From Zygnema circumcarinatum SAG 698-1b (taxonomy: Eukaryota; Plantae; Zygnematophyceae): a stretch of 64,000 nt of DNA. Location of the stretch: contig CM074804.1 of the NCBI GenBank assembly GCA_037447605.1, positions 1,984,001 to 2,048,000 on the forward strand, in the 5' to 3' direction. Numbering within the stretch: the first letter of the stretch is position 1; each line of letters opens with the position of its first letter. Of the stretch, positions 7,167-64,000 are shown in pieces. The translations under genes and the position numbers were made by a program. Under the pieces are notes generated by a model, which was not told the origin of the DNA, ran no database searches, and worked only from the letters and a program-made list of their open reading frames with translations.

Positions 7167-8639
7167 CACAGACAATTCGGAACCGTCGGTTTCTGGTTTT
7201 TTCAAAACAACTTCTGGTAAAAAAGTGAAAATGGCATTGAGCTCACGATGGCGAGGCCATCAAATGTACATGGACAAAAGCAACATGTGGAACCACGAGG
7301 AGCTGGTCGCACGGTTTCGCTCTTCAGTTTTAGTTTTGCTGTAAATTTAGTTTGACTCGGCTTGGGTTGTTTCGTGACTCGTGAGATCAATTAGCTCATG
7401 TTCAATGGAAAAGTTCAATAAAACTTGGAGAATGATACTGCACCCCCATTTTTCCGTAGGCTTATGTAATATATTCAGCCAATAAAGCTTCCAAGCAAGC
7501 ATTGCGCCTGTCTTTTTCTTTGTGCACATCGCAAGGGAAAGTGTTGCATAGTTCTTGATTATTTCAATTGCCATCTGCATTTGTGTCCCTTTTACGAGCA
7601 GTGCAGAGAATTCGAAGAAGCTCAAGATGTAACTATGTTCTAGAAATGGTCCTCCATGAATCTTGTTATTCGAGCCAACCATGTGTATGTCACGGGGACG
7701 GTGACTCGCCATTGCCGCGACAAGCTCCGCACTCCGCGCCATCGCACGCACGCGCGCACTTTGAACGAGTCGTGGTATTCTCTACTCTGTCCCGACGCAT
7801 TCAAACGATGAGGGATTCGGCATTGGCCTCGCGCGGGGAGGGTTTTGAATGAATGAATGAATGTCCTCAAAAGCGGACAAAGCAACGCCTCACCAACGCC
7901 ATGCAATTGTTGATGTGCCTGCAGATGCCGTCGCTCCCTCGCCACACAACTACGCATGCGCGAGCAACCTGCTGCCGCCCTCCCCTGCGCTTCTATGCAG
8001 TTCGGATGCAGTTCAGTCCAGTTCAGCTCAGTTCAGTTCACATCGATATAGCGACATTATATCGAACCGACTGGAGAATCGTGTCCTCTCCCTCACCGTA
8101 TCGCGATATACATCCGAATGGTCCGATACGAATGAGACACTCGATATGCATCGATCAGATCCCCGATACGGTCCTGCCCGCCGCCACTCGTGGTAAGCGG
8201 CGCTGCGATTGGCCGACGCTCCGAGGTAGTTGGAAAGGGGCCGAGGACGTGGCGGAGGGAGAGGGAGGGGAGGGAGAGGGCAGGAGCTGTAGGAGGGGGG
8301 AATTTTGTTCGTCAAGCAGGAGGAGGTGGGAGCTGCTGCATAAGCGGGCGGAGTATTGCAGTTGCTGCAGTATGAATTCGGCCGGTTTTTCGGTGGGAGC
8401 AGTGAGGAAGAAGGCGGCTGAGAGGGGCCGTACTCTCAGGAACCTTCTTTTGACTTGGAGGTGGAACAACCTGACCAATTCTGCAAGGGACCACTTAGTG
8501 AGGAAGTTGAAGAATGCGTATTGGGAGTACGTTGATTGTTGTCGAACCCTGAAGCGCTTCCTCAAGACGCCTAAGAACGCCCAGAACGCTAAGTCTACGG
8601 TAACTCCTCGATACCAAAACTTTTGCAGCCCCCACCACC

Positions 8640-11335
8640 TTGAAGCGCCGCATAGAAACGTCTAACCCTAAAACTGCCGTATGGCAGGCATTCCTAATGA
8701 AACCGTTTTGGAGACGTCCATTGAAGATACGATCCTTCAGAAAACAAGTAAATGCTATATGCGTTTCGTCTAAGACGGTGTTCTTAGATTTCTTTGGCCG
8801 AAAAGCGTTGGCGAGTGAAAGAAGAAATGAAGAATGCAAGGCAATATCACCAATTTCGGCAAAACAAGAACGGAGAGAAGGGTGCTGCTCAAACGAAGAA
8901 GAGGCTGTTAGCTTTATTAAACAAATTAATAAAAGGGATGGTTTTGTGCGACCTTTGGCGTTGCGGGCATTTGGGAACGTCGAGCGTTTGAAAGTAGCGG
9001 CGTGTGGTTTTAGGGGTGATGTCATCTTCGGAGGAAAGGGGGGTGAATTGGAAATTAAGAAAGGCGATTTAAAAAACTTATTGGAGAATGCTTGGTTAGG
9101 AGATGATGTTATCAATGGTTTCTTGCGTCTTTTACAGGTAAGCTTGGCTACGCTTTTCTAGCCCATTTTTTTCCTTTCCTCACCCCCTCCCTTTCCCCCC
9201 CATCACCTCTCTCTCGCTCTCTCTCTTTCTCGTTCTCTCGCTCTCTCCCTCCCAAATCTTTCTTTCTGAAGGCAGCAGTGCCGGGATTGTGGTATGGGTC
9301 ACTCGGTTTGACTTGGGAATACCCTGACTTTGTTTAATGAACGTTGCCTGACCTTAGTGTTGTTTTGAGCTATCTAAAATCTTACGTTGTGTTCATTTGA
9401 TGATGTCGATGTGTTTAGGCTCGTGCGAATGCATTTGCATCTTCTGAGCTAGGGTGAGCGTCTGTGCAACTTCTTCTTTGACCTTTATGCTTGCTGTATG
9501 CCTCTTGGGAGCAAACAGTATGATTCGTTTATTGAAATCGACACTCTTTTTTGCGGTGACTCGTCTCTAGCAGCCAGTATACTCAGAATGTAACGTTCAT
9601 TTGTTTTTGAGAATGGGAGAGTAAAAGCGAGTGGTTTTTTTATGTGGCAGGTTGAAAGTACAGTTTTTGAGCACTTTCCTTTTCACCAAACTGACAGATG
9701 TCCCGCAGTTGGGATGTCCGACTGGATTTAACATTCAGGGCGTTCGTCGATGGACACGGAATGTGGTGAATATTTTTCCCGGAAAAACTTGTAGCTTTGA
9801 ACAATTCCAAATAGTCAGAATTCCCAAAACTTTAAAAAGCAAGTTGTTTTCTTCCCCTTCTCTTACTTAAAACCGTATTTCCTGGGGGGAAATAAAAACC
9901 AGGATGGTTGTTAAAAAGAGATGGTGGAAAGTATATGACGTAGACGAGGTGCTCCTTTTCTTTTCTGATTTCCTTTTCTTTTGGGATGGTTGGCAGAACC
10001 TGTTTGATCAAGACTTGGTCCTGCTACCAGTGAATTTGCATGCCGCTAAACACTGGTATGTTCTTTCAAAATATATATATTTTTATATCGAATGTTACGA
10101 GTGATTCAACGTGGAGTTTATAATTTGGACGCTTTTTGTGTTTTTAGAGTTTTACTGTGTGCTCAGATTGTGTGGTGGTGGTGGTGCTTAAACAGGGTCT
10201 TGGTCGCTGTCTATATGAAAGAAAGACGAATTGAATACTACGACTCGTTGCCGAGACATGTGGAGGCGAGCTACGTGGACTACGTGTTGACTGTGGTATG
10301 TACTTATTTTTGAAGCCCTTCACAAGATAACTCGCTTGTGCAAGATTCTAAAGCAGTACTGTTGTTATGCTTTGTCGCCTATTGACTGCTTATTGTAGCA
10401 ATAACACCAAGGCCTAAAAAGAATTCATCTCAATTGTCCGATGTGCTGTAATGCGTGGTTAATACCCTCACTAAACTTTCATCGTATATTGGATTCCTAG
10501 ATAGGGTAGAAGACCATGTAACACCAAGGCCTAAAAATAATTCATCTTAATTGTCCGATATGCTGCAATGTGTGGTTAATACCCTCACTAAACTTTCATC
10601 TTATATTAGATTCCCAGATAGGGTAGAGGACCATGTACGAAAGTGGACCTACTATAAGAATATCACTCTTTTGAAATGCATTTCCAAGCTACTGAATTCT
10701 CTGGCCTTTTTCACCTTCCCTTTTCTCTGATAAAGGAACCGGATGTTCAGGTCTTTAGGGTTCTTTGCACTAGCCAGATGAAGCATTACATTGCTCTTGC
10801 TTTTTGGCTCATGAGTGTATTTCATGTGGTAATCTGTTCCTTTCAATTGGGTTTCGATTGTCCAGGTTGAGAGATACATGCATGCCATGGCTGAAGCTGA
10901 GAACAACATTGAGTTTGCGACAGCAGCGTGGAAAAAGCATCAAATGGTAGAAGGTGTCCCTGTACAGGTTTGACGTCCTTTTCCCCATCGCCCCTCTGTC
11001 TATAGAAGGTTTGTATTGCCTGTGAGGTTGTTAGGGTTCCACTAAAAGTACGATCCTTGTCATTTCTGGGTCTTGGTGTGAGAAGATGCTTTGCAAGACT
11101 GACTTCCTCATGCATGAAAGTGTTTGAATGGTGATCTTTTCATGCCTCCCCTCCCCTCGCATTACAGGATGATAAAACAGCTTGCGGAGTATTTCTGTGC
11201 ACTTTTGCGGATTTGCTTGCCCGGGGGCTCCGCCCACCCTTTCAATTCAGTGCCGCGGATGTGGAGGGGCTCCGGAATGGCATTGCGCTCTGCCTCATGA
11301 ACGGAGTGCTGCCTTACACCCCCAGCCAAACATAA
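8640..11335 (+). CDS. Ulp1/SENP-family SUMO protease (peptidase C48), 7 exons, catalytic triad intact; start uncertain (first in-frame ATG 8697)
   Basis: Exons ..-9137, 9419-9453, 9651-9765, 9997-10055, 10196-10295, 10866-10967 and 11168-11335 are all GT-AG and phase-consistent. They translate to DLKNLLENAWLGDDVINGFL, VQFLSTFLFTKL, GVRRWTRNV, DLVLLPVNLHAAKHW (His), IEYYDSL (Asp), VPVQ|DDKTACGVF (Gln, Cys) and PFQFSAADVEGLRNGIA; TAA at 11333-11335. Confidence 0.9.
10402..10635. repeat. 117-bp tandem duplication inside a Ulp1 intron
   Basis: TAACACCAAGGCCTAAAAA...GACCATG occurs at 10402-10518 and 10519-10635 with scattered substitutions. Confidence 0.9.
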
Positions 11336-12651
11336 GCAACGAGCCGGGGGGCGCAAAATGAGAGGCTAAAGGTGGCCCTAATTCGAGGAGCGCGGGTCAT
11401 ATGGTGAAAGATATGGCCGCCAATGGGACCTCCTTACTGGAGGTCCATCTTTGAATTCAACAAAGTTCAAATTTTAAGGCCGTTGATTTGGCGACGGCCG
11501 AGGATGAAAAAGTGATCCGTTGAAAAAGATGCCAACGAATGCTCTTCCAAACAGGGGATGGGTAGATATGGATGAAGGAATAACAGATAGATCGCCTATT
11601 CATTTTGACATTTGTAGGGTCTTTCTTGGCGGTGCGGGACAAAGAGTTTTGAGAATTGAGTGTATAGGTGTTTGTTCAAGAAAGAAGGCTTAGAAGTTCT
11701 GTAGCAAGTGGTTAGGTCAAAGATGCGCTTTGGATTGCCTGAAGGCCGAAGTTGGTGCAATGTAAATAGATGTACAAAGGGAGACTTGTTGTTCGATTTT
11801 GAAGCCACACCCCGGGCTTAGAGTGAGGATGAGGGGGGGGAGTGCGTCTGAGAAAGGAAACGAATCCAGTTTTCACTTGTTTAGTCGAACGGAAGATTAT
11901 TTTTTTTTATTCATTATTTTTTTCAATTTCAAATAAGTACGCCGTTTTTTCAGTTTCAAATAAGTATGCCGCGTCACTCTCAGATGAATATGATGTTCAC
12001 GTTTCGTAGTCGCTGGTTCTAGTGCAGAGATCATCCGCACACATACATCTCCCATGCATGGGTACCCCATACATGCAGGTCTTTGCGTATCCCATACTTA
12101 CAAATCGCCCATAATGCACACATACATACATTCGATAGGCGATAATCAAAGCACTGAATTTCCCTACCCCAACAACAGCACATTGTGCATGAGAAATCAA
12201 CTCCTCTCGAAGCAAACAACAATAACAACTCAACACCAACAAATGATCGCTAGTAGGGCCGGTGAAATAGGGGGCGAAATATCCAAAACAGAGGGGCGGG
12301 ATAACCAAAACAGGGAAGGCGAAATATTCGAAAAAGGGGGTGGGAAATCCAAAATAGGGGGGTGCAGTATCATTCTCCTAGAACTTTCCAGGACGATTAC
12401 CAAAAGCAAAACCCAAGAGAAGAAAGAGGTGCCATATATTTTTTCGCATGTCTCGGACTTTGTGGCAAAACCCTAAAATCGACTTCAGTATATCGCAAGC
12501 ACCGTGAAGGGCACATCTCTACAAATTCACAGCTTTCATCCATTTCTCTCCTCGCAGACGAGCAGAAACGGTAGCGATGGCACACAGCTCATTCAGGCTC
12601 CGCTTCAAGCCACCTTCTGCATTTCGACGAGTTCGTCCCCCTTTACAACTC

Positions 12652-31002: not shown

Positions 31003-34000
31003 TCACGTGCGCCAGGGGCAGGCCCGGCGCAGGAAGGCGGCGAGGGGGGCGGAGCGGCGCGTGGCGCAGAGGACGTGCGCGCGGTTGCGGAACTCGAAGG
31101 CGGGGAACCAGCAGCCGGTCAGACTCACCAGGGCGTGCTTCGTGGCGGGGTCTGGCAAGCAAGCAGGCAGGAGGAGGACGACGAGGATGAGAGGGGGGAG
31201 GGGGGGGAAGGGAGAGGGGGGGGAGAGGGGGGAAGGGAGAGGGGGGAAGGGAGAGGGGGGCGAAGGGAGAGGGGGGGGAGAGGGGGGAAGGGAGAGGGGG
31301 GGGAGATGGGGGACGAGAGGGAGAGAGGGGAGAGGCAGGGAGAGAGAGAGAGCGAGAGGAGAGGGACAGAGAGAGAGAGTGGAGAGCGAGAGGGAAGAGA
31401 CAGGGAGAGAGAGAGGAGAGAGGCAGGGAGAGAGAGTGAGTGGAGAGAGAGGGGAGTGAGAAAGAGCAAGGGGAGAGACAGGGAGAGAGAAAGGAGAGAG
31501 GAGAAAGTGGGAGGGGGGGTGATAGGGAGAGAGAAAGAGCGAGAGGGGAGAGACATGAAGAGAGAGAGAGAGAGGAGAGAGGAGAAAGAGAAGGGGGAGA
31601 GACAGGGAGAGAGCAAGAGCGAGAGGGGAGATGGTTTCAAGGTTTTAGGGGTTTTCCGACTTTTAGCGTTCAAGCTTATATGGCTTTCCGGGATTTACGG
31701 TTTCGGTTTCAAGGGCCCAAAATAAGTGACTTTACAAAAAGTGACTATGAAACTTTACGACGTCGCTTCAAAATTCTATTTTCTCTCAAACTCATGAAAT
31801 CAAGGAGGAAAGAATTTAAAACCCTAAAACACCCTGAAACCCTAAAAACCCTATTTGCCCTAAAAAAGGGTTCAGGAACTGAGCCTCACCGTTCCAGAGT
31901 TGAAGGAAGCAGTCGTAGCCCATAGAATCAAATTCCTTAACGACTTCTTCGAGGGTGATCACCTGCCACTTGTCCAAAAAGTGGTATCCAAAATCGACAA
32001 TATCAATCCTGTGCTCTTGAAAGGCCTTAGCAGCGCCCTTCAAAATATAGGGGTCGTGCCTGCATCATTGCATACCCCAACACCAGTTATTTTTTCATTA
32101 AAAAAAAAAAAAGAGAAAAAGATACAAAGAGAGAGAGACATCCACCCTCCTTTTGTGCTTCTAGCAAAACCTATGGACTGCCCAAATTTCAAAAGGAGGA
32201 GATTCCAAAGAAAGAAGCAATTTTTGGAACCTTGATATCACAACACAGCGATCAAAGCTTCCACAAACCCTAACCCTAAAACATCACATTAACAGATCTC
32301 TTTAAAGTTGGCCATGTAAAAAAAATCTCATAACTTCAACCACCCAAAACATATCTAACGAAAGATCTTAGACACGTCTAACAAGTCAATATACACAGCC
32401 TCATTTCGTCCATCTTTTCTCGAAACCCAAATATCAATATTCGACTTGAGTAAAATTTTCGATGAAAGCTTCACTTTGTACGAGTGAGGCGTTTGCTGTG
32501 GATGCAATGTGACTTTATCGAGGGGCGAGAACGCCTTGTATGGATGGACTACAACATGACCTTATTGAGATGTCAAGCCCTTGAGCGTCTCCTATCGACG
32601 TAACATGTCTTAATCGCAAGACAAACGCGTCTGGTAAGAAATATGGTGTGACTTTATCGAGCGGCGCATACCCTTCCGCGTCCACTCGCAGGAAGTTGAT
32701 CCGCGCGATCTCGTTCTCCTCCATGAACTCGTCCACGGTCATGACGCGGACCCGCGTGTGCCCATCGGTCACTTCGCCAAACCGCCCTTCTTCGAAACCA
32801 AGCCTGGAAGAGAGGGTGGTAGAGGAGAGTGAATTGAGGGAGGGAGAGAGCGGAGGGGGAGGGGGGAGGGGGGAGGGGGCAGGGGGGAGGGGAGAGGGGG
32901 AGGGGGAGGGGGAGGGAGAGGGGGAAGGGGAAGGGGAGGGAGAGGGAGATTGGGAGGGACGGGGGGATGAAGGGAGGGGGAGGAGGAGAGGAGAGAAAGG
33001 GGGAGAAAGGCAGAGAGGAGTGGACGAGGGTGAGGAAAGGAAGGAGAGGAAGTGGGAGAGAGAGAGGGGGAGGTAGTGGGGGGGGAAGAGAGAGGCGGAG
33101 GGGGAGGTAGATAGGCAGAGGAGAAAAGAGAGGGAGAAGAGATGGGGGAGAGGGAGAGGGCGAGGCACAACGAGGGGGAGACAAAGTGGGATGGAGGGAG
33201 GGAGGGAAGGACGCAGAGAGGGTGAGAGAGACAGACAGACGGAGAGGTTGAGGGAGAGGAAGAGGAGGAGAGAGGGGGAAACAGGAGAGTGAGATTCATT
33301 TCCTTTCCAAAGCAGCACTGCCGTGTGTTTATCAACACATAGGGGAATCAAGGCAGCCAAATCAACAATAACAAGAGTACTCAAATTTTAAAAAAAGGAA
33401 CAAAAAAAGGGGAGAAAAAGGAAGAGATCTTGACACTATAAAGCTTTGAACTATCCCTGGTAATGAGATTTTTGGGTTTACGTCTAAAATTCAGCATAGA
33501 AAGGGCAGTGTGAAACGTACGGCGTGATGGGAAAATCATCGATTCCGCTGTGGTTGCTCACTGCTCCATGTATTACTGACAATTTCTCATACTTCAGCCA
33601 TTTCTGAACCGCCGCTAACGCCACACCTTCAAGCGTTTTAACTTACAAAACCATGTGCCCTTAGTGACACGCATGTGACTATTGATAATGTTAGGGTTCA
33701 AGGTCCTCCAGAGGTTCAAGGATTTTAGGGTTTAGGGTTTGAGGTTCAAGATTTAGGGTTTAGGGTTAGGGGTTCAGGATTTAGGGTTTAAGGTTCGGGG
33801 CTTATGGTCAGGGGTTTAGAATTGGGGGTTTGGAGTTAGGGATTTAGGGTTTAGAATTCATTTAGGGTTTCGGGTTTGAGATTTAGGGTTTACGGTTCAG
33901 GGTTCAAGTTTAGGGTTCGGAATTTAGGGTTTAAGGTTTGGGTTTCAGGTTTTAGGGTTCGTGGTTTAGGGTTTAGAGTGTTTCTTAGGGTTTCGGGTTT

Positions 34001-41190: not shown

Positions 41191-43482
41191 CTGCTGAATG
41201 AAGTGAAGAATGTTAGTGTAAAGTAGTTAGGGACTTGTTGTACACTAAGTTGTTGGTACTAAGTTCTAAGGAGGGGTGTGCTCAAAAGTGTCCACATTGT
41301 ACGGAGGGGCGTCTAGGCGACCGTACAAGTCTTTAAGGGGTGTGCGTATAGCGCGCAGAGTCTGATTTGGCAAAGCAAGGCATCAGAATGTCGGTGCAGC
41401 AAATCAGTGGTACGATTTGTAAGGCCAGGACCTTGGGTGTACGGACATTGGTCGGTGGCGCGGCGCGGCGTGGCGGAGTCAGATGTGACGTGGCACGACG
41501 CGACAAATCGGGACGTGACGAGGCGCGAATCAGCGCGCGGAGCAGAACTGACGAGGTACAGAGTCAGCAATGTCTCATTTGGAGGACAGTGGCGAATTGA
41601 AAGGCGCCACGTGTCGGGTTAAAGGGAAGGCCTGTACGGCCTAGGTCGGTGGCGCTCGTAGGCTTACAGGGTCCCACATGACGCCAAGTAATGAGGAGTC
41701 AGATCCTACGGTGGAGGACTCGGATGGAGATAAGGCTGAGGCGGATCTGACGGCATTGATGTGCTGGATCCGTGCAAGCTGAGGAGGATCCAACGGCGCG
41801 AGATTAGGATCGGGATAAGGGTCTTGCAAGGCGTAGCATGTGCGGCCGTGACGTGACAATGTCACTAATGGCGCCATATTGTATTTAAGGGTTAGATTGT
41901 ATGGTAGAAGTTAACCTTCTCGTGACTCACATTGGGAGTGAGGCTATCTTGCTTAGGGCCAAGGAGATAGTGGGAAGAGTTCAGCTTGTAGTGGGTGGTT
42001 TATTCACGTAGCTTGAGAGGAGGTGNNNNNNNNNNTGTTTTGTAGGTGTTAACCTTCTCGTGACTCACATTGGGGACGTGAGGCTATCTTGCTTTGGGCC
42101 TGGAAGATAGTGGGAAGAGTTCAGCTTGTAGTGGGGTGGTGTATTCACATAGCTTGAGTTTAGGTGCTTGAAGCTTGGCTCTAGAGTTGTCAAGTTGTAT
42201 TCATCTTTAACTTAAGGAGTTTTAGGCTGGAGGCTTTCTCCTTACATCTTCTTCATTCCGCTGATCTGTTCTATTGCATTCAGTATTGTTGTGTGTCCAC
42301 ATCCTTGAAGAGTGTGATTGAACAAGTCATTGAAGATGTCGAGTTCTACCGAGGGTAGAGGAGAAGTGGCAGCACCTCGCACGGAGGCCGCTGCATCAAC
42401 AGTATTAATTAGTTTGATTCATTTTTTTTTTTTTTTGTTTGGAAAAATCACACACACAAATATACACATTAACAAACACAGTCACTGTGAAAAGAAAAAA
42501 AAGAAAAAAAAACCAGCTAAATATTACAACATTAGGCCTCATGTTGTATTAATTAGTGTGTTTTTTTTCTTTTTTTTTTGTGAAAGTCACACGCGCAAAT
42601 ACACACACACACAAACACAATCACAGGCTAAAAAAAAAAAAAACAGGCTGCTGAATGAAGTGAAGAATGTTAGTGTAAAGTAGTTAGGGACTTGTTGTAC
42701 ACTAAGTTGTTGGTACTAAGTTCTAAGGAGGGGTGTGCTCAAAAGTGTCCACATTGTACGGAGGGGCGTCTAGGCGACCGTACAAGTCTTTAAGGGGTGT
42801 GCGTATAGCGCGCAGAGTCTGATTTGGCAAAGCAAGGCATCAGAATGTCGGTGCAGCAAATCAGTGGTACGATTTGTAAGGCCAGGACCTTGGGTGTACG
42901 GACATTGGTCGGTGGCGCGGCGCGGCGTGGCGGAGTCAGATGTGACGTGGCACGACGCGACAAATCGGGACGTGACGAGGCGCGAATCAGCGCGCGGAGC
43001 AGAACTGACGAGGTACAGAGTCAGCAATGTCTCATTTGGAGGACAGTGGCGAATTGAAAGGCGCCACGTGTCGGGTTAAAGGGAAGGCCTGTACGGCCTA
43101 GGTCGGTGGCGCTCGTAGGCTTACAGGGTCCCACATGACGCCAAGTAATGAGGAGTCAGATCCTACGGTGGAGGACTCGGATGGAGATAAGGCTGAGGCG
43201 GATCTGACGGCATTGATGTGCTGGATCCGTGCAAGCTGAGGAGGATCCAACGGCGCGAGATTAGGATCGGGATAAGGGTCTTGCAAGGCGTAGCATGTGC
43301 GGCCGTGACGTGACAATGTCACTAATGGCGCCATATTGTATTTAAGGGTTAGATTGTATGGTAGAAGTTAACCTTCTCGTGACTCACATTGGGAGTGAGG
43401 CTATCTTGCTTAGGGCCAAGGAGATAGTGGGAAGAGTTCAGCTTGTAGTGGGTGGTTTATTCACGTAGCTTGAGAGGAGGTG
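40581..43482. other. ~1.45-kb direct duplication across a 10-N gap; probable assembly artefact
   Basis: 40581-42025 is repeated at 42036-43482, differing as far as I can see only in homopolymer length. The junction is exactly the gap at 42026-42035. Confidence 0.8.
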
Positions 43483-46365
43483 CTTGAAGCTTGGCTCTAG
43501 TGTTGTCAAGTTGTATTTCATCTTTATCTTAAGGAGTTTTAGGCTGGTGGCTTTCTCCTTACATTTTCATATTTCCGCTGAGTTGTTCTCTTGCATTNNN
43601 NNNNNNNAGAGGAGAAGTGGCAGCCCCACGCATGGAGGGCTCTGCAACAACAAGTGGTATCAGAGCCGAAGGCGAAGAAGACGTGAAGTTTACCATTCCA
43701 ACTTTCGATGGGAAGAACTACAAGCGGTGGAAGTTTCGCATGCTCACAGTGCTGGAGAACAAGCGGCTGTTGGGGTATGTGAATGGCTCCATTGTGGCCC
43801 CCGATTCAGAGATTAATCCACTTGAGTTTGAGAAGTGGAGGGTTAAGGATTGCAAGGTTAGGACCCTGCTTTGTGCTGGCGTTAGGTGAGGAACCTAAGA
43901 AACCTGATTTCAGAGTTAAAGACAGCTCGGGAGATGTGGGATACTCTAGAGAAGATTTATGATGTGGTAGATAATGCCACTGTAGTTTATCTCTACACGG
44001 AGCTAGGAAAACTCAGTTTGGATTCAGGGGAGGAGCTGAAAGACTATGTGATCAAGTTTGATAATCTGATGCAAAAGTTTGATGGGATGAAGCAGCCCCT
44101 TCACTTGGATCACAAGATTAGTCTATTCCTTGGAGGCTTGCCGGACAGATTTGACCCTGCTTGCACTGCTCTACGAACTCAGCTTTCCACGACTAAGATG
44201 ACCTTTGAGCAGGTCAAGAGGAGAGTGGTAGAGGAGGATGGTCTTCAAGACAAGAAGCAGTACAGGTCAAGTTCGGAGAAACTGTATGCTGCAACTGCTC
44301 GCCCATACAGGAACGGCAAGGGACCAAACGCAGCCAAAGATGGTGGAGAGCTGAAGACTCAGAGGACTTGCTACTCTTGTGGGAAGACCGGTCACTTCAA
44401 GAGGAACTGCCCCAACGTTCAGAATGGCGGTTCATCCTCGAATGCAGATGCTCTAAACGAGCAAGAAGGGAGGAGGGGTGATGGCAGGTATCCCAGAGAT
44501 GAACGCAAGAGGATTCACGAGACGAACTTGATGTTCTCGGATTGGGAACCTAATGATGAGTTTGTCGGATGTCTTAGAGTTGAAAATTCAGCTAAACCTT
44601 GGGTGATTGATTCCGGTGCTTCAAGGCACATGTGCGTGGACGACTCACTCTTTGCAGAGAAGGAGACTTTGGAGGGAACCCGCTCGGTCTACTCAGCAAC
44701 TGGAGAAGGAGTCTCGGTGACGCAAGGCGGAACAGTCAAGTTGGAGGTGCTCGGGGAGGGAAGCACGCAGAGGGTTGTCCATGTTGGTAACGTACTGCAT
44801 ACTCCCGGACTACAGATTAATTTCCTCTCTGTTAGTCAGCTGTGTGAGAAGGACTATGGAGTATGGTTTGAGAAGGGTAGTTGTGAGGTCATTCACAAGG
44901 AGACAGGGCAAGTCTTGTGCAAGGGAATCCAGCAAGGTGGGCTTTACTTTCTAGAGTGGAAGGAGGCTCAAGGGCTGAGCTATCCCGCCAAGGACCCTGT
45001 GGAGGAACCCATTCACCATAAGATAGATCCAGACCAGCTTGGAGGAGGAAAGGGGATGCTAGAGCAAGCATTGAGGCTCAGGGGAGCAGGGGATTATTTC
45101 GCCAACGACATTTCAGATAGCCAGGCTAAGGGGGTTGAAAGACCCATCACCGAAAGGGTGGACATTAGTGGTGGTGAGAATGTGTGCGAATTCCAGGATC
45201 ACTCAGAGTTNNNNNNNNNNGAGGGGGCAGCTTGTTAGGACAAGGGAGCATTCATTTGGTTGTGGGACACTAGAGAATAGTCGTGGTCTCATGGAACTAG
45301 GACCCATGGAGAACTAAGTACCAAGAGGGGGATTGTTAGTGTAAAGTAGTTAGGGACTTGTTGTACACTAAGTTGTTGGTACTAAGTTCTAAGGAGGGGT
45401 GTGCTCAAAAGTGTCCACATTGTACGGAGGGGCGTCTAGGCGACCGTACAAGTCTTTAAGGGGTGTGCGTATAGCGCGCAGAGTCTGATTTGGCAAAGCA
45501 AGGCATCAGAATGTCGGTGCAGCAAATCAGTGGTACGATTTGTAAGGCCAGGACCTTGGGTGTACGGACATTGGTCGGTGGCGCGGCGCGGCGTGGCGGA
45601 GTCAGATGTGACGTGGCACGACGCGACAAATCGGGACGTGACGAGGCGCGAATCAGCGCGCGGAGCAGAACTGACGAGGTACAGAGTCAGCAATGTCTCA
45701 TTTGGAGGACAGTGGCGAATTGAAAGGCGCCACGTGTCGGGTTAAAGGGAAGGCCTGTACGGCCTAGGTCGGTGGCGCTCGTAGGCTTACAGGGTCCCAC
45801 ATGACGCCAAGTAATGAGGAGTCAGATCCTACGGTGGAGGACTCGGATGGAGATAAGGCTGAGGCGGATCTGACGGCATTGATGTGCTGGATCCGTGCAA
45901 GCTGAGGAGGATCCAACGGCGCGAGATTAGGATCGGGATAAGGGTCTTGCAAGGCGTAGCATGTGCGGCCGTGACGTGACAATGTCACTAATGGCTTCAT
46001 ATTGTATTTAAGGGTTAGATTGTATGGTAGAAGTGCTAACCTTCTGTGACTCACATTGGGAGTGAGGCTATCTTGCTGAAAACAAGGAGATAGTGGGAAG
46101 AGTTCAGCTTGTAGTGGGTGGTTTATTCACGTAGCTTGAGAGGAGGTGCTTGAAGCTTGGCGTTAGTGTTGTCAAGTTGTATTCCAACTTTATCTTAAGG
46201 AGTTTTAGGCTGGTGGCTTTCTCCTTTCATTTTCAATTTTTACGCTGAGTTTTTCTCTTGCATTTAGTGTGCTTTGTGTGATTGAGCAATTCATTGAAGA
46301 TGTCGAGTTCTACCGAGGGTAGAGGAGAAGCGGCAGCACCACGCAAGGAGGGCGCTGCAACAACA
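42668..46365 (+). mobile_element. Ty1/copia LTR retrotransposon (gag-protease visible; INT/RT/RH not seen)
   Basis: 5' LTR 42668-43652 and PBS TGGTATCAGAGCC (tRNA-iMet type, 43655-43667). Gag FDGKNYKRWKFRM has a frameshift at ~43886, then zinc knuckle CYSCGKTGHFKRNC and protease WVIDSGASRHMC. PPT AAGAGGGGGAT precedes the 3' LTR 45334-46365. TSD AAGAA on both sides; gaps at 43598 and 45211. Confidence 0.95.
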
Positions 46366-55122: not shown

Positions 55123-55227
<105 letters not shown>

Positions 55228-62858: not shown

Positions 62859-63061
62859 CACTTACTTGTGTCACCGCCGCGACCAATCAGCGCCGCTCGT
62901 TCGTACTCCGCGCACTCGCGGCGCACTCACCAAAGTCAGAGCACCGACATTACTAGATCTAAGAGCACTACGCCTAGCAGATCTCATGTTCTACAAACTG
63001 AGTACCACAACAAGTTAGTGTGTGCCATACAATGTCTAACTATCATACACTAACACTAACA
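62859..63061 (-). mobile_element. U3 end of an LTR of the same family as 55847-56879, in inverted orientation
   Basis: The reverse complement matches 55847-~56050 with only a handful of substitutions. It ends CACTAACA at 63061 and has no PPT on the outer side. Confidence 0.9.
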
Positions 63062-64000
63062 AATTCTCAAGTACAAGTCAAAAGCTTTCGGAGCTTTCAG
63101 AGATTGGCAGACTCAGATGGAGCGAGAGAGCGGTCAGAAACTGAAGACGCTGCGCTCGGACAACGGAGGGGAATTCAAGTCGAAGGAGTTCGGCGGGTAC
63201 TTGAAGGCTCGCGGAATAAGGCATGAATTTTCTGCTCCTTACTCCCCTCAAAGTAATGGAGCTGCTGAGAGGGTCAATAGGACGCTGGGGGACATGGCAC
63301 GGACCATGCTGATAGATTCCCCCTTCCCGGCATCCTTTTGGGGAGAGGCGGTGATGACCGCAACTTACCTTAGAAATAGATGCCCATCTTCTGTGCTTAA
63401 GGATCAGGTTCCTGAAGAGGTGTGGAGTGGGAGGAAACCCACGGTGTCCCACCTGAAGACCTTTGGAGCGCGCTACTGGTCGACAGTGCCGAAAGCGAGG
63501 CAGAAGAGAAAGTTCGACCCCCGAGCCGTGGAAGGGTACCTTCTCGGCTACAACATGGACAGTCGCACCTACCGGGTGTGGAACCCTCGAGCAAACGAAG
63601 TGCAGAGCTCGAGAGACGTTACGGTGGACGAGAAGGGGGCGGTGACTCGGCTCAGTGGGACCCGACCCCAAAGGTAGGTTGGAAATTCTGTACGGGGATG
63701 TGGAGACCAGCGAAGGGCATGGGCGCCTCTCAGGTCCAAGCTTAGAGGAGATCAGCGCACTGGAGCGAGGGAGCTGAGCCGGAAGCAACGCCCGAACATG
63801 AAGCGGCCGTGGGAACACGAGGCCCGAGAAGCCGCGAGCGGGGGAGCCGCGACCGTGGCCGGAGCGGCACCACTACACCTCACCTGTCCGGCAAGAGAAA
63901 CTAAGCGAAACTGTACTTTACATGGGCAGATCTAAGGATTTGGAGACGGCTGAGAAAGAGGCTATGTTGTCGAGCATGCCTCCCGGGTTTGTCCCGGGGA
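63062..64000 (+). mobile_element. Ty1/copia integrase (rve core + SH3-like) fragment
   Basis: KLKTLRSDNGGEF...GIRHEFSAPYSPQSNGAAERVNRTL...FWGEAVMTATYLRNRCPS...KFDPRAVEGYLLGY...SRDVTVDE (63062-~63680), decaying afterwards. Confidence 0.93.

Follow-up and report, generated by a model that had tools for sequence, protein, structure and literature searches.

ULP (Ulp1-like protease) domains have been found in Mutator-like elements (MULEs) of plants, hydra, and lancelet, as well as in Ginger1 (PMC2836005), and in both MULE and CACTA families of grapevine (PMC2528002). The Ulp1-bearing VANC (KIU) genes of Arabidopsis VANDAL MULEs have been linked to family- or sequence-specific hypomethylation (reviewed in PMC13317346), and the Peptidase_C48 (C48) domain has been treated as an accessory domain of DNA transposons (PMC5751038). 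Here, we describe a locus from the streptophyte alga Zygnema circumcarinatum SAG 698-1b (assembly GCA_037447605.1, contig CM074804.1, positions 1,984,001 to 2,048,000), in which an element of ~4.95 kb, bounded by terminal inverted repeats (TIRs), encloses a predicted ULP gene. All coordinates below refer to this 64-kb stretch, hereafter the window, in which the element spans 7427-12378. A first-pass annotation of the same DNA had stated that Ulp1 domains ride on MULEs, exemplified by Arabidopsis Kaonashi, and on Zisupton elements. The former claim agrees with the literature (PMC13317346, PMC2528002); of the latter, the accessory role of C48 in DNA transposons stands (PMC5751038), whereas Zisupton itself was unconfirmed.

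With moderate confidence, we interpret the locus as one inserted copy of a non-autonomous class II TIR transposon, most likely Mutator-like, that carries a divergent ULP gene as its sole cargo and would move only with a transposase supplied in trans; with lower confidence, its ULP may help the transposon family. DNA transposons that carry ULP, with or without their transposase, have already been described in land plants and animals, and the present locus is a further example in a streptophyte alga.

Element ends and insertion footprint

The 21-bp terminal sequence GGAGAATGATACTGCACCCCC occurs at exactly two sites in the window, in inverted orientation and with 0 mismatches, and such a pair is not expected by chance (0 expected; none in 100 dinucleotide-preserving shuffles). 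Even when up to six mismatches were allowed, no site beyond the two ends was found within the 64-kb window. Immediately outside this pair lie the octamers TAAAACTT and TAGAACTT, which are identical at 7 of 8 positions (P for at least 7/8 = 3.8e-4) and form a target site duplication (TSD). Perfect 21-bp TIRs together with an 8-bp TSD represent the insertion footprint of a DDE-type element. By gapped alignment, the inverted repeat reaches 26 of 28 bases, past which the similarity between the left and right ends is no better than that of shuffled sequence. Extension of the TIR into the flanking CT was rejected, since the TSD is then lost. Because moving the boundary outward by 2 to 3 bases destroys the duplication, a 21-bp TIR with an 8-bp TSD is the best reading of the boundary. 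The first-pass annotation had described both the perfect TIRs and the mismatched TSD, and our analysis confirmed them; its further suggestion of some age, drawn from the TSD mismatch, is weak, given one difference in 16 bp of TSD versus none in 42 bp of TIR.

We also considered a composite of two miniature inverted-repeat transposable elements. This arrangement was ruled out, and a single element preferred over two flanking ones, because the terminal 21-mer is confined to the two ends. Likewise, no further repeats of pieces of the element were detected in the window, except for a CT microsatellite. The ends themselves are asymmetric: four tandem subterminal units of ~22 bp (GGGGGCGAAATATCCAAAACAG and variants) are present at the right end, where the TIR resembles a fifth, diverged unit of the same array (12270-12378; unit pattern GGGGGYG.A.TATC…), and the left end consists of the TIR alone. 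These subterminal units might be protein-binding sites.

A divergent ULP gene as cargo

Three exons within the element matched C48 or SENP proteins. For the last 41 residues of exon 2, all four Protein Data Bank (PDB) matches were to SENP2 (SENP2 residues 29-72, E 0.015); the stretch …LEIKKGDLKNLLENAWLGDDVINGFLRLL aligned to the start of the SENP2 catalytic domain, and the WLNDxxIN motif of the N-terminal SUMO-contacting helix is present in it (…LLENAWLGDDVINGFLRLL aligned to SENP2, E 0.015). Exon 6, which contains YYDSL, aligned to positions 98-120 of PF02902 (E 0.057, 13.7 bits), and exon 8 aligned to positions 171-206 (E 0.016) or, with its stop-free lead-in, to positions 163-206 (E 0.005), scoring 15.5 to 17.1 bits. 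The ACGVF of exon 8 aligned to the DCGVF of SENP5 (9gnn) and of the Ulp1-like 6dg4, and the nearest ESM-Atlas clusters of this exon were C48 (score 0.94, 193-204 shared features). More specifically, exons 6 and 8 are collinear on PF02902 (98-120, then 163-206), and their summed scores exceed the gathering score of 20.7 bits. Each single C48 match is at a level that unrelated families also reached by chance among the 69 six-frame segments of the element; taken together, three collinear, same-strand exon matches to one of 24,736 families appear convincing and are not what chance would be expected to give. Thus, the assignment to C48 follows from three different exons on the same strand and in collinear order that point to one family, which supports the Ulp1-type protease proposed in the first-pass annotation.

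The other exons contributed less. Exon 4 had no significant family match, either singly or read through as a stop-free segment; exon 5, at 19 aa too short to search alone, showed no C48 match as a stop-free read-through; and exon 7 had no family match either alone or as a stop-free read-through. In the PDB search with exon 6, no C48 chain was among the matches. The motifs FLFTKL, VRRWTRNV, and LLPVNL…HW appear to lie at their family-typical places in SENP1/Ulp1, which serves as a lead. Overall, the predicted C48 domain is divergent, with scores that are low for a core SUMO protease, and the ULP gene is apparently intact, its domain being structurally complete as judged by motifs.

In the seven-exon model on the + strand (exons 2 to 8 in the table), every junction is GT...AG and in phase, and a single terminal stop, TAA, closes the reading frame. 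The junctions, phase, and stop agree with the first-pass model, although its description of the gene as correctly spliced describes the model only. An extra 5' exon that begins at ATG 8372 and ends at the donor GTAACT joins in phase to give 1257 nt with one terminal stop. We regard this upstream exon as tentative and optional, since phase fit is its only support; no homologue of it was found, and its Pfam matches were at chance level only. Exons were joined by a local script solely to count length and stops, and the family searches were run exon by exon.

Composition is gene-like. The exons exceed the introns both in GC content (47.5% vs 41.3%) and in the observed/expected (o/e) ratio of CpG (0.94 vs 0.58), and the 945 bp upstream of the gene within the element show 53% GC and undepleted CpG (o/e 1.04). 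A genuine gene preceded by a promoter region would show such values, which are no proof of one, and the 5' part of the element may contain a promoter or leader for ULP. A stop-free stretch of 270 codons in that region (7853-8662) was ruled out as coding, having no family match; it reflects composition rather than coding, because all frames there are stop-poor. Within the introns, we noted a CT-rich tract in intron 2 (9207-9251) and, in intron 6, a duplicated 117-bp unit, which might have arisen by duplication in place or as a small repeat that inserted there.

In exon 2, the first ~110 residues are an orphan region as far as the sequence searches reach. Word searches were empty both with the entire exon and with its C48 portion; an exhaustive HMMER search of exon 2 against 1.84 billion representatives returned only one spurious repeat protein; and a metagenome protein-pattern scan with the exon was empty. 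A HEAT/alphaRep assignment for exon 2 residues 69-105 (window 8892-9002, …AVSFIKQINKRDGFVRPLALRAFGNV…) was rejected, as its hits were sums across repeat targets in which no individual stretch was significant. The divergent domain and the orphan N-terminus would be more in keeping with a transposon lineage than with recent copying of a core host gene, which is an argument rather than a test.

Superfamily, mechanism, and alternative explanations

The six frames of the element contain 69 stop-free segments that are 40 aa or longer, and comparison of all of these with Pfam revealed no family of the transposase, integrase, zinc-finger, or VANC type, no MULE, SWIM, or FAR1 family, and no domain other than C48. 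The two parts of the element outside the gene, ~0.95 kb and ~1.04 kb in length, are too short to accommodate a transposase. Elsewhere in the window, none of the 113 stop-free segments that reach 110 aa contained a DNA transposase; what they did contain were retroelement domains of the copia/gypsy type and a small number of host domains. Nothing in the window matched Rfam, and the TIR 21-mer had no match in metagenome contigs. The earlier claim that no transposase is recognizable is therefore upheld by the element segments, whereas the accompanying claim that the element had lost its transposase assumes a loss: a transposase may at no time have been part of the element, as in Pack-type capture.

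For superfamily, our first guess would be Mutator-like, because the terminus begins with GG; the documented association of ULP with MULEs points the same way. MULEs are characterized by TSDs of 9-11 bp and G-rich termini, to be compared here with a TSD of 8 bp and a terminus that starts with GG. As no mudrA-type transposase was found among the 69 segments, the element would at best be a non-autonomous MULE derivative. A hAT element was rejected: the 8-bp TSD fits, but the terminus GGAGA does not follow the hAT consensus YARNG, and no Dimer_Tnp_hAT was found. For Zisupton/KDZ, the 8-bp TSD length fits, and no KDZ/SWIM transposase was present in the element segments. Perfect TIRs and the lack of any domain beyond C48 set the locus apart from the Kaonashi KI-MULE/KIU-VANC type.

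Under the interpretation that we favor, a related autonomous element would supply the transposase that recognizes the 21-bp ends, and perhaps the 22-bp array, a supply in trans being needed because the element itself is without a transposase. With lower confidence, expression of the ULP gene may be driven by the CpG-rich 5' region of the element, and its product may act in trans as a predicted isopeptidase of SUMO (or another ubiquitin-like modifier) that aids the element family. Its targets could be, for example, silencing, chromatin, or repair factors, or the transposase, from which SUMO would be stripped. The anti-silencing role proposed in the first-pass annotation we retain as a hypothesis, by analogy: MULE, CACTA, and Ginger elements have retained ULP domains, and the Ulp1-bearing VANC genes of Arabidopsis VANDALs provide a parallel. 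A bolder version of this proposal seems to us improbable as a whole: that the element is the ULP-only helper half of a two-component system, maintained under selection, whose deSUMOylase acts in trans to lift the silencing of, or to aid repair for, a Mutator-like family that supplies the transposase, the 22-bp array being the recognition motif.

Several observations weigh against the favored interpretation. Its superfamily is not fixed, given that classical MULEs usually have TSDs of 9-11 bp and that a length of 8 bp is compatible with hAT, P, Zisupton, Novosib, and Merlin as well. A single copy was seen, with no relative in the window, in metagenome contigs, or in protein libraries, which leaves the mobility of a family unproven, and the 69-segment Pfam scan found no VANC-type or DNA-binding domain in the element. 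As for the protease, no single exon attains the Pfam gathering score (13.7 to 17.1 vs 20.7 bits). The first-pass annotation had called the catalytic His, Asp, and Cys and the oxyanion Gln intact; the Cys (ACGVF) is aligned to the Cys of SENP5 and 6dg4 and the Asp (YYDSL) falls within the part of exon 6 that aligned to Pfam, whereas only motif and spacing point to the His (KHW) and to the Gln (VPVQ followed by DD, 6 residues ahead of the Cys). Moreover, the residue preceding the catalytic Cys is Ala, where both aligned solved chains (SENP5 and 6dg4) have Asp. Finally, exon 2 was unmatched among proteins predicted from public genomes and transcriptomes, in libraries whose coverage of Z. circumcarinatum is unverified, and the missing match argues mildly against the gene being annotated or strongly expressed.

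Among the alternatives, Pack-type capture survives best and is a possible, clearly less probable explanation. It holds that a non-autonomous TIR element took up a host ULP-like gene from genomic DNA, introns included, and that the gene is a passenger still intact because the event is recent. Cargo with six to seven introns and a gene-like contrast between exon and intron composition is what such a capture would bring; the perfect TIRs suggest that the insertion may be young, and ULP sequences in plant MULEs have been termed transduplicated (PMC13317346). A fresh copy of an ESD4/OTS-type gene, however, would be expected to look different from the divergent domain found here, with its weak exon scores and its Ala before the Cys.

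We consider it unlikely that the element is an immobile, single fossil copy whose ULP has been domesticated by the host, its ends having been kept by chance or recency. The intact reading frame, the undepleted CpG in exons and 5' region, the one copy visible in the window, and the orphan N-terminal region are all compatible with domestication, but perfect 21-bp TIRs and a near-perfect TSD oppose long residence, and conservation in other organisms was not detected in the protein and metagenome searches with exon 2. Least of all do we believe in an ordinary host ULP gene that lies beside a chance or locally made inverted repeat: the single copy, the absent transposase, and the unassignable superfamily would suit it, but an exact 21-bp inverted pair with 0 expected in shuffles, a 7/8 direct repeat of canonical TSD length immediately outside it (P ~4e-4), and a subterminal repeat array at one end, typical of TIR elements, make it very improbable.

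Features of the element and its surroundings (positions in the 64-kb window)
Feature	Position	Strand	Remarks
Left TSD	7419-7426		TAAAACTT; 7/8 match to 12379-12386
Left TIR, 21 bp	7427-7447	+	GGAGAATGATACTGCACCCCC; exact, 0 expected
5' non-coding part	7448-8371	+	GC-rich, stop-poor in all frames
Tentative exon 1, 76 codons	8372-8599	+	in phase with exon 2
Exon 2, 150 codons	8688-9137	+	in-frame ATG at 8697; first ~110 residues orphan; last ~40 residues predicted C48 start, …DLKNLLENAWLGDDVINGFLRLLQ
Exon 3, 35 nt	9419-9453	+	linker from first helix to FLFTKL motif; GT-AG, phase kept; too short for searching
Exon 4, 115 nt	9651-9765	+	…FLSTFLFTKL…VRRWTRNV; SENP-core likeness by eye only
Exon 5, 59 nt	9997-10055	+	NLFDQDLVLLPVNLHAAKH(W); putative catalytic His; W codon split by intron 5; motif only
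Exon 6, 100 nt	10196-10295	+	VLVAVYMKERRIEYYDSL…; putative catalytic Asp; PF02902 positions 98-120, E 0.057
117-bp tandem duplication, 2 copies	10402-10637		92% identity; inside intron 6
Exon 7, 102 nt	10866-10967	+	variable insert region; ends VPVQ, putative oxyanion Gln
Exon 8, 55 codons + TAA	11168-11335	+	DDKTACGVF…; predicted catalytic Cys and C-terminal helices
3' non-coding part	11336-12269	+	without protein family in stop-free segments
4 tandem ~22-bp subterminal repeats	12270-12357	+	absent at left end
Right TIR, 21 bp	12358-12378	-	exact
Right TSD	12379-12386		TAGAACTT; 7/8 match to left octamer

Elsewhere in the window, a stop-free segment at 2-355 on the - strand matched AAA_lid_RFC1, an RFC1-like AAA+ lid (E 3.8e-4). 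An ELG1/ATAD5-type (ELG1/RFC1-like) gene on the - strand appears to run off the start of the window, and the transposon appears to lie a few kb upstream of this gene or in its 5' region. Copia-type retroelement pieces were found at 43469-45235 (+) and 63060-63872, with Gag, zinc knuckle, and Pol_BBD at 43886-45235 and an integrase core plus SH3_retrovirus at 63060-63674; pieces of RVT_1, RVT_2, and RNase H are present elsewhere. A 289-aa open reading frame (ORF) at 32518-33387 (-) carries an FkbM-type methyltransferase domain (E 2.5e-6) and belongs to a stretch in which GC skew is extreme (32-38 kb; +0.32 then -0.52). A long CT/AG microsatellite occupies 55126-55225.

Comparison with described ULP-bearing elements

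The Kaonashi (KI) MULEs with their KIU genes resemble the Zygnema element in being Mutator-type elements with an accessory ULP (C48) gene, for which an escape from silencing has been proposed (PMC13317346, PMC2528002). KI-MULEs, in contrast, are non-TIR elements in which ULP is one of three genes beside the transposase, whereas the element described here has perfect TIRs, no transposase, an 8-bp TSD, and an algal host. The ULP-bearing TIR-MULEs of melon and rice and the CACTA-ULP families of grapevine and rice are likewise TIR-bounded class II elements with a ULP1-like region, which may point either way with respect to the transposase (PMC2528002). What defines those families is the transposase, mudrA or Tnp2; there is none here, and CACTA termini and a 3-bp TSD are absent from this element.

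In Ginger1 and animal Mutator elements, too, a Ulp1 domain is tied to a cut-and-paste element (PMC2836005). There, the Ulp1 domain is C-terminal and fused to the transposase or integrase, whereas the Zygnema gene is a stand-alone ULP gene. Ginger TSDs are also shorter, at 4-5 bp. Zisupton/KDZ elements share the 8-bp TSD and differ in their KDZ/SWIM transposase. Pack-MULEs are similar in being non-autonomous TIR elements with an interior, host-like gene that contains introns; they usually carry gene fragments, however, whereas a whole, apparently intact catalytic domain and ORF are predicted here. With the cellular enzymes SENP2 and SENP5 and the Ulp1-like 6dg4, the predicted protein has in common the order of the domain and the motifs WL.D.VIN, HW, YYDS, and Q-x5-CG. 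It differs from cellular Ulp1/SENP in its weak similarity, its orphan N-terminus, the Ala in place of Asp before the Cys, and its position inside a transposon.

Ulp1/SENP domains have been repeatedly acquired by DNA transposons (MULE, CACTA, Ginger, and, reportedly, Zisupton), and the best lead on their role is the anti-silencing VANC/KIU system of Arabidopsis. As one copy, the present element is an ordinary addition to this known pattern, and its interest would grow if it proved to belong to a family with conserved and expressed ULP copies. A small TIR-bounded element with only an apparently intact ULP would also be a handy test object, in that the predicted protease could be assayed apart from a transposase, and copy number, selection, and expression would tell whether transposons keep deSUMOylases for their own benefit. 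Should the two-component version of the proposal hold, ULP and transposon would be functional partners in a streptophyte alga as well, beyond the land plants in which such a partnership has been studied.

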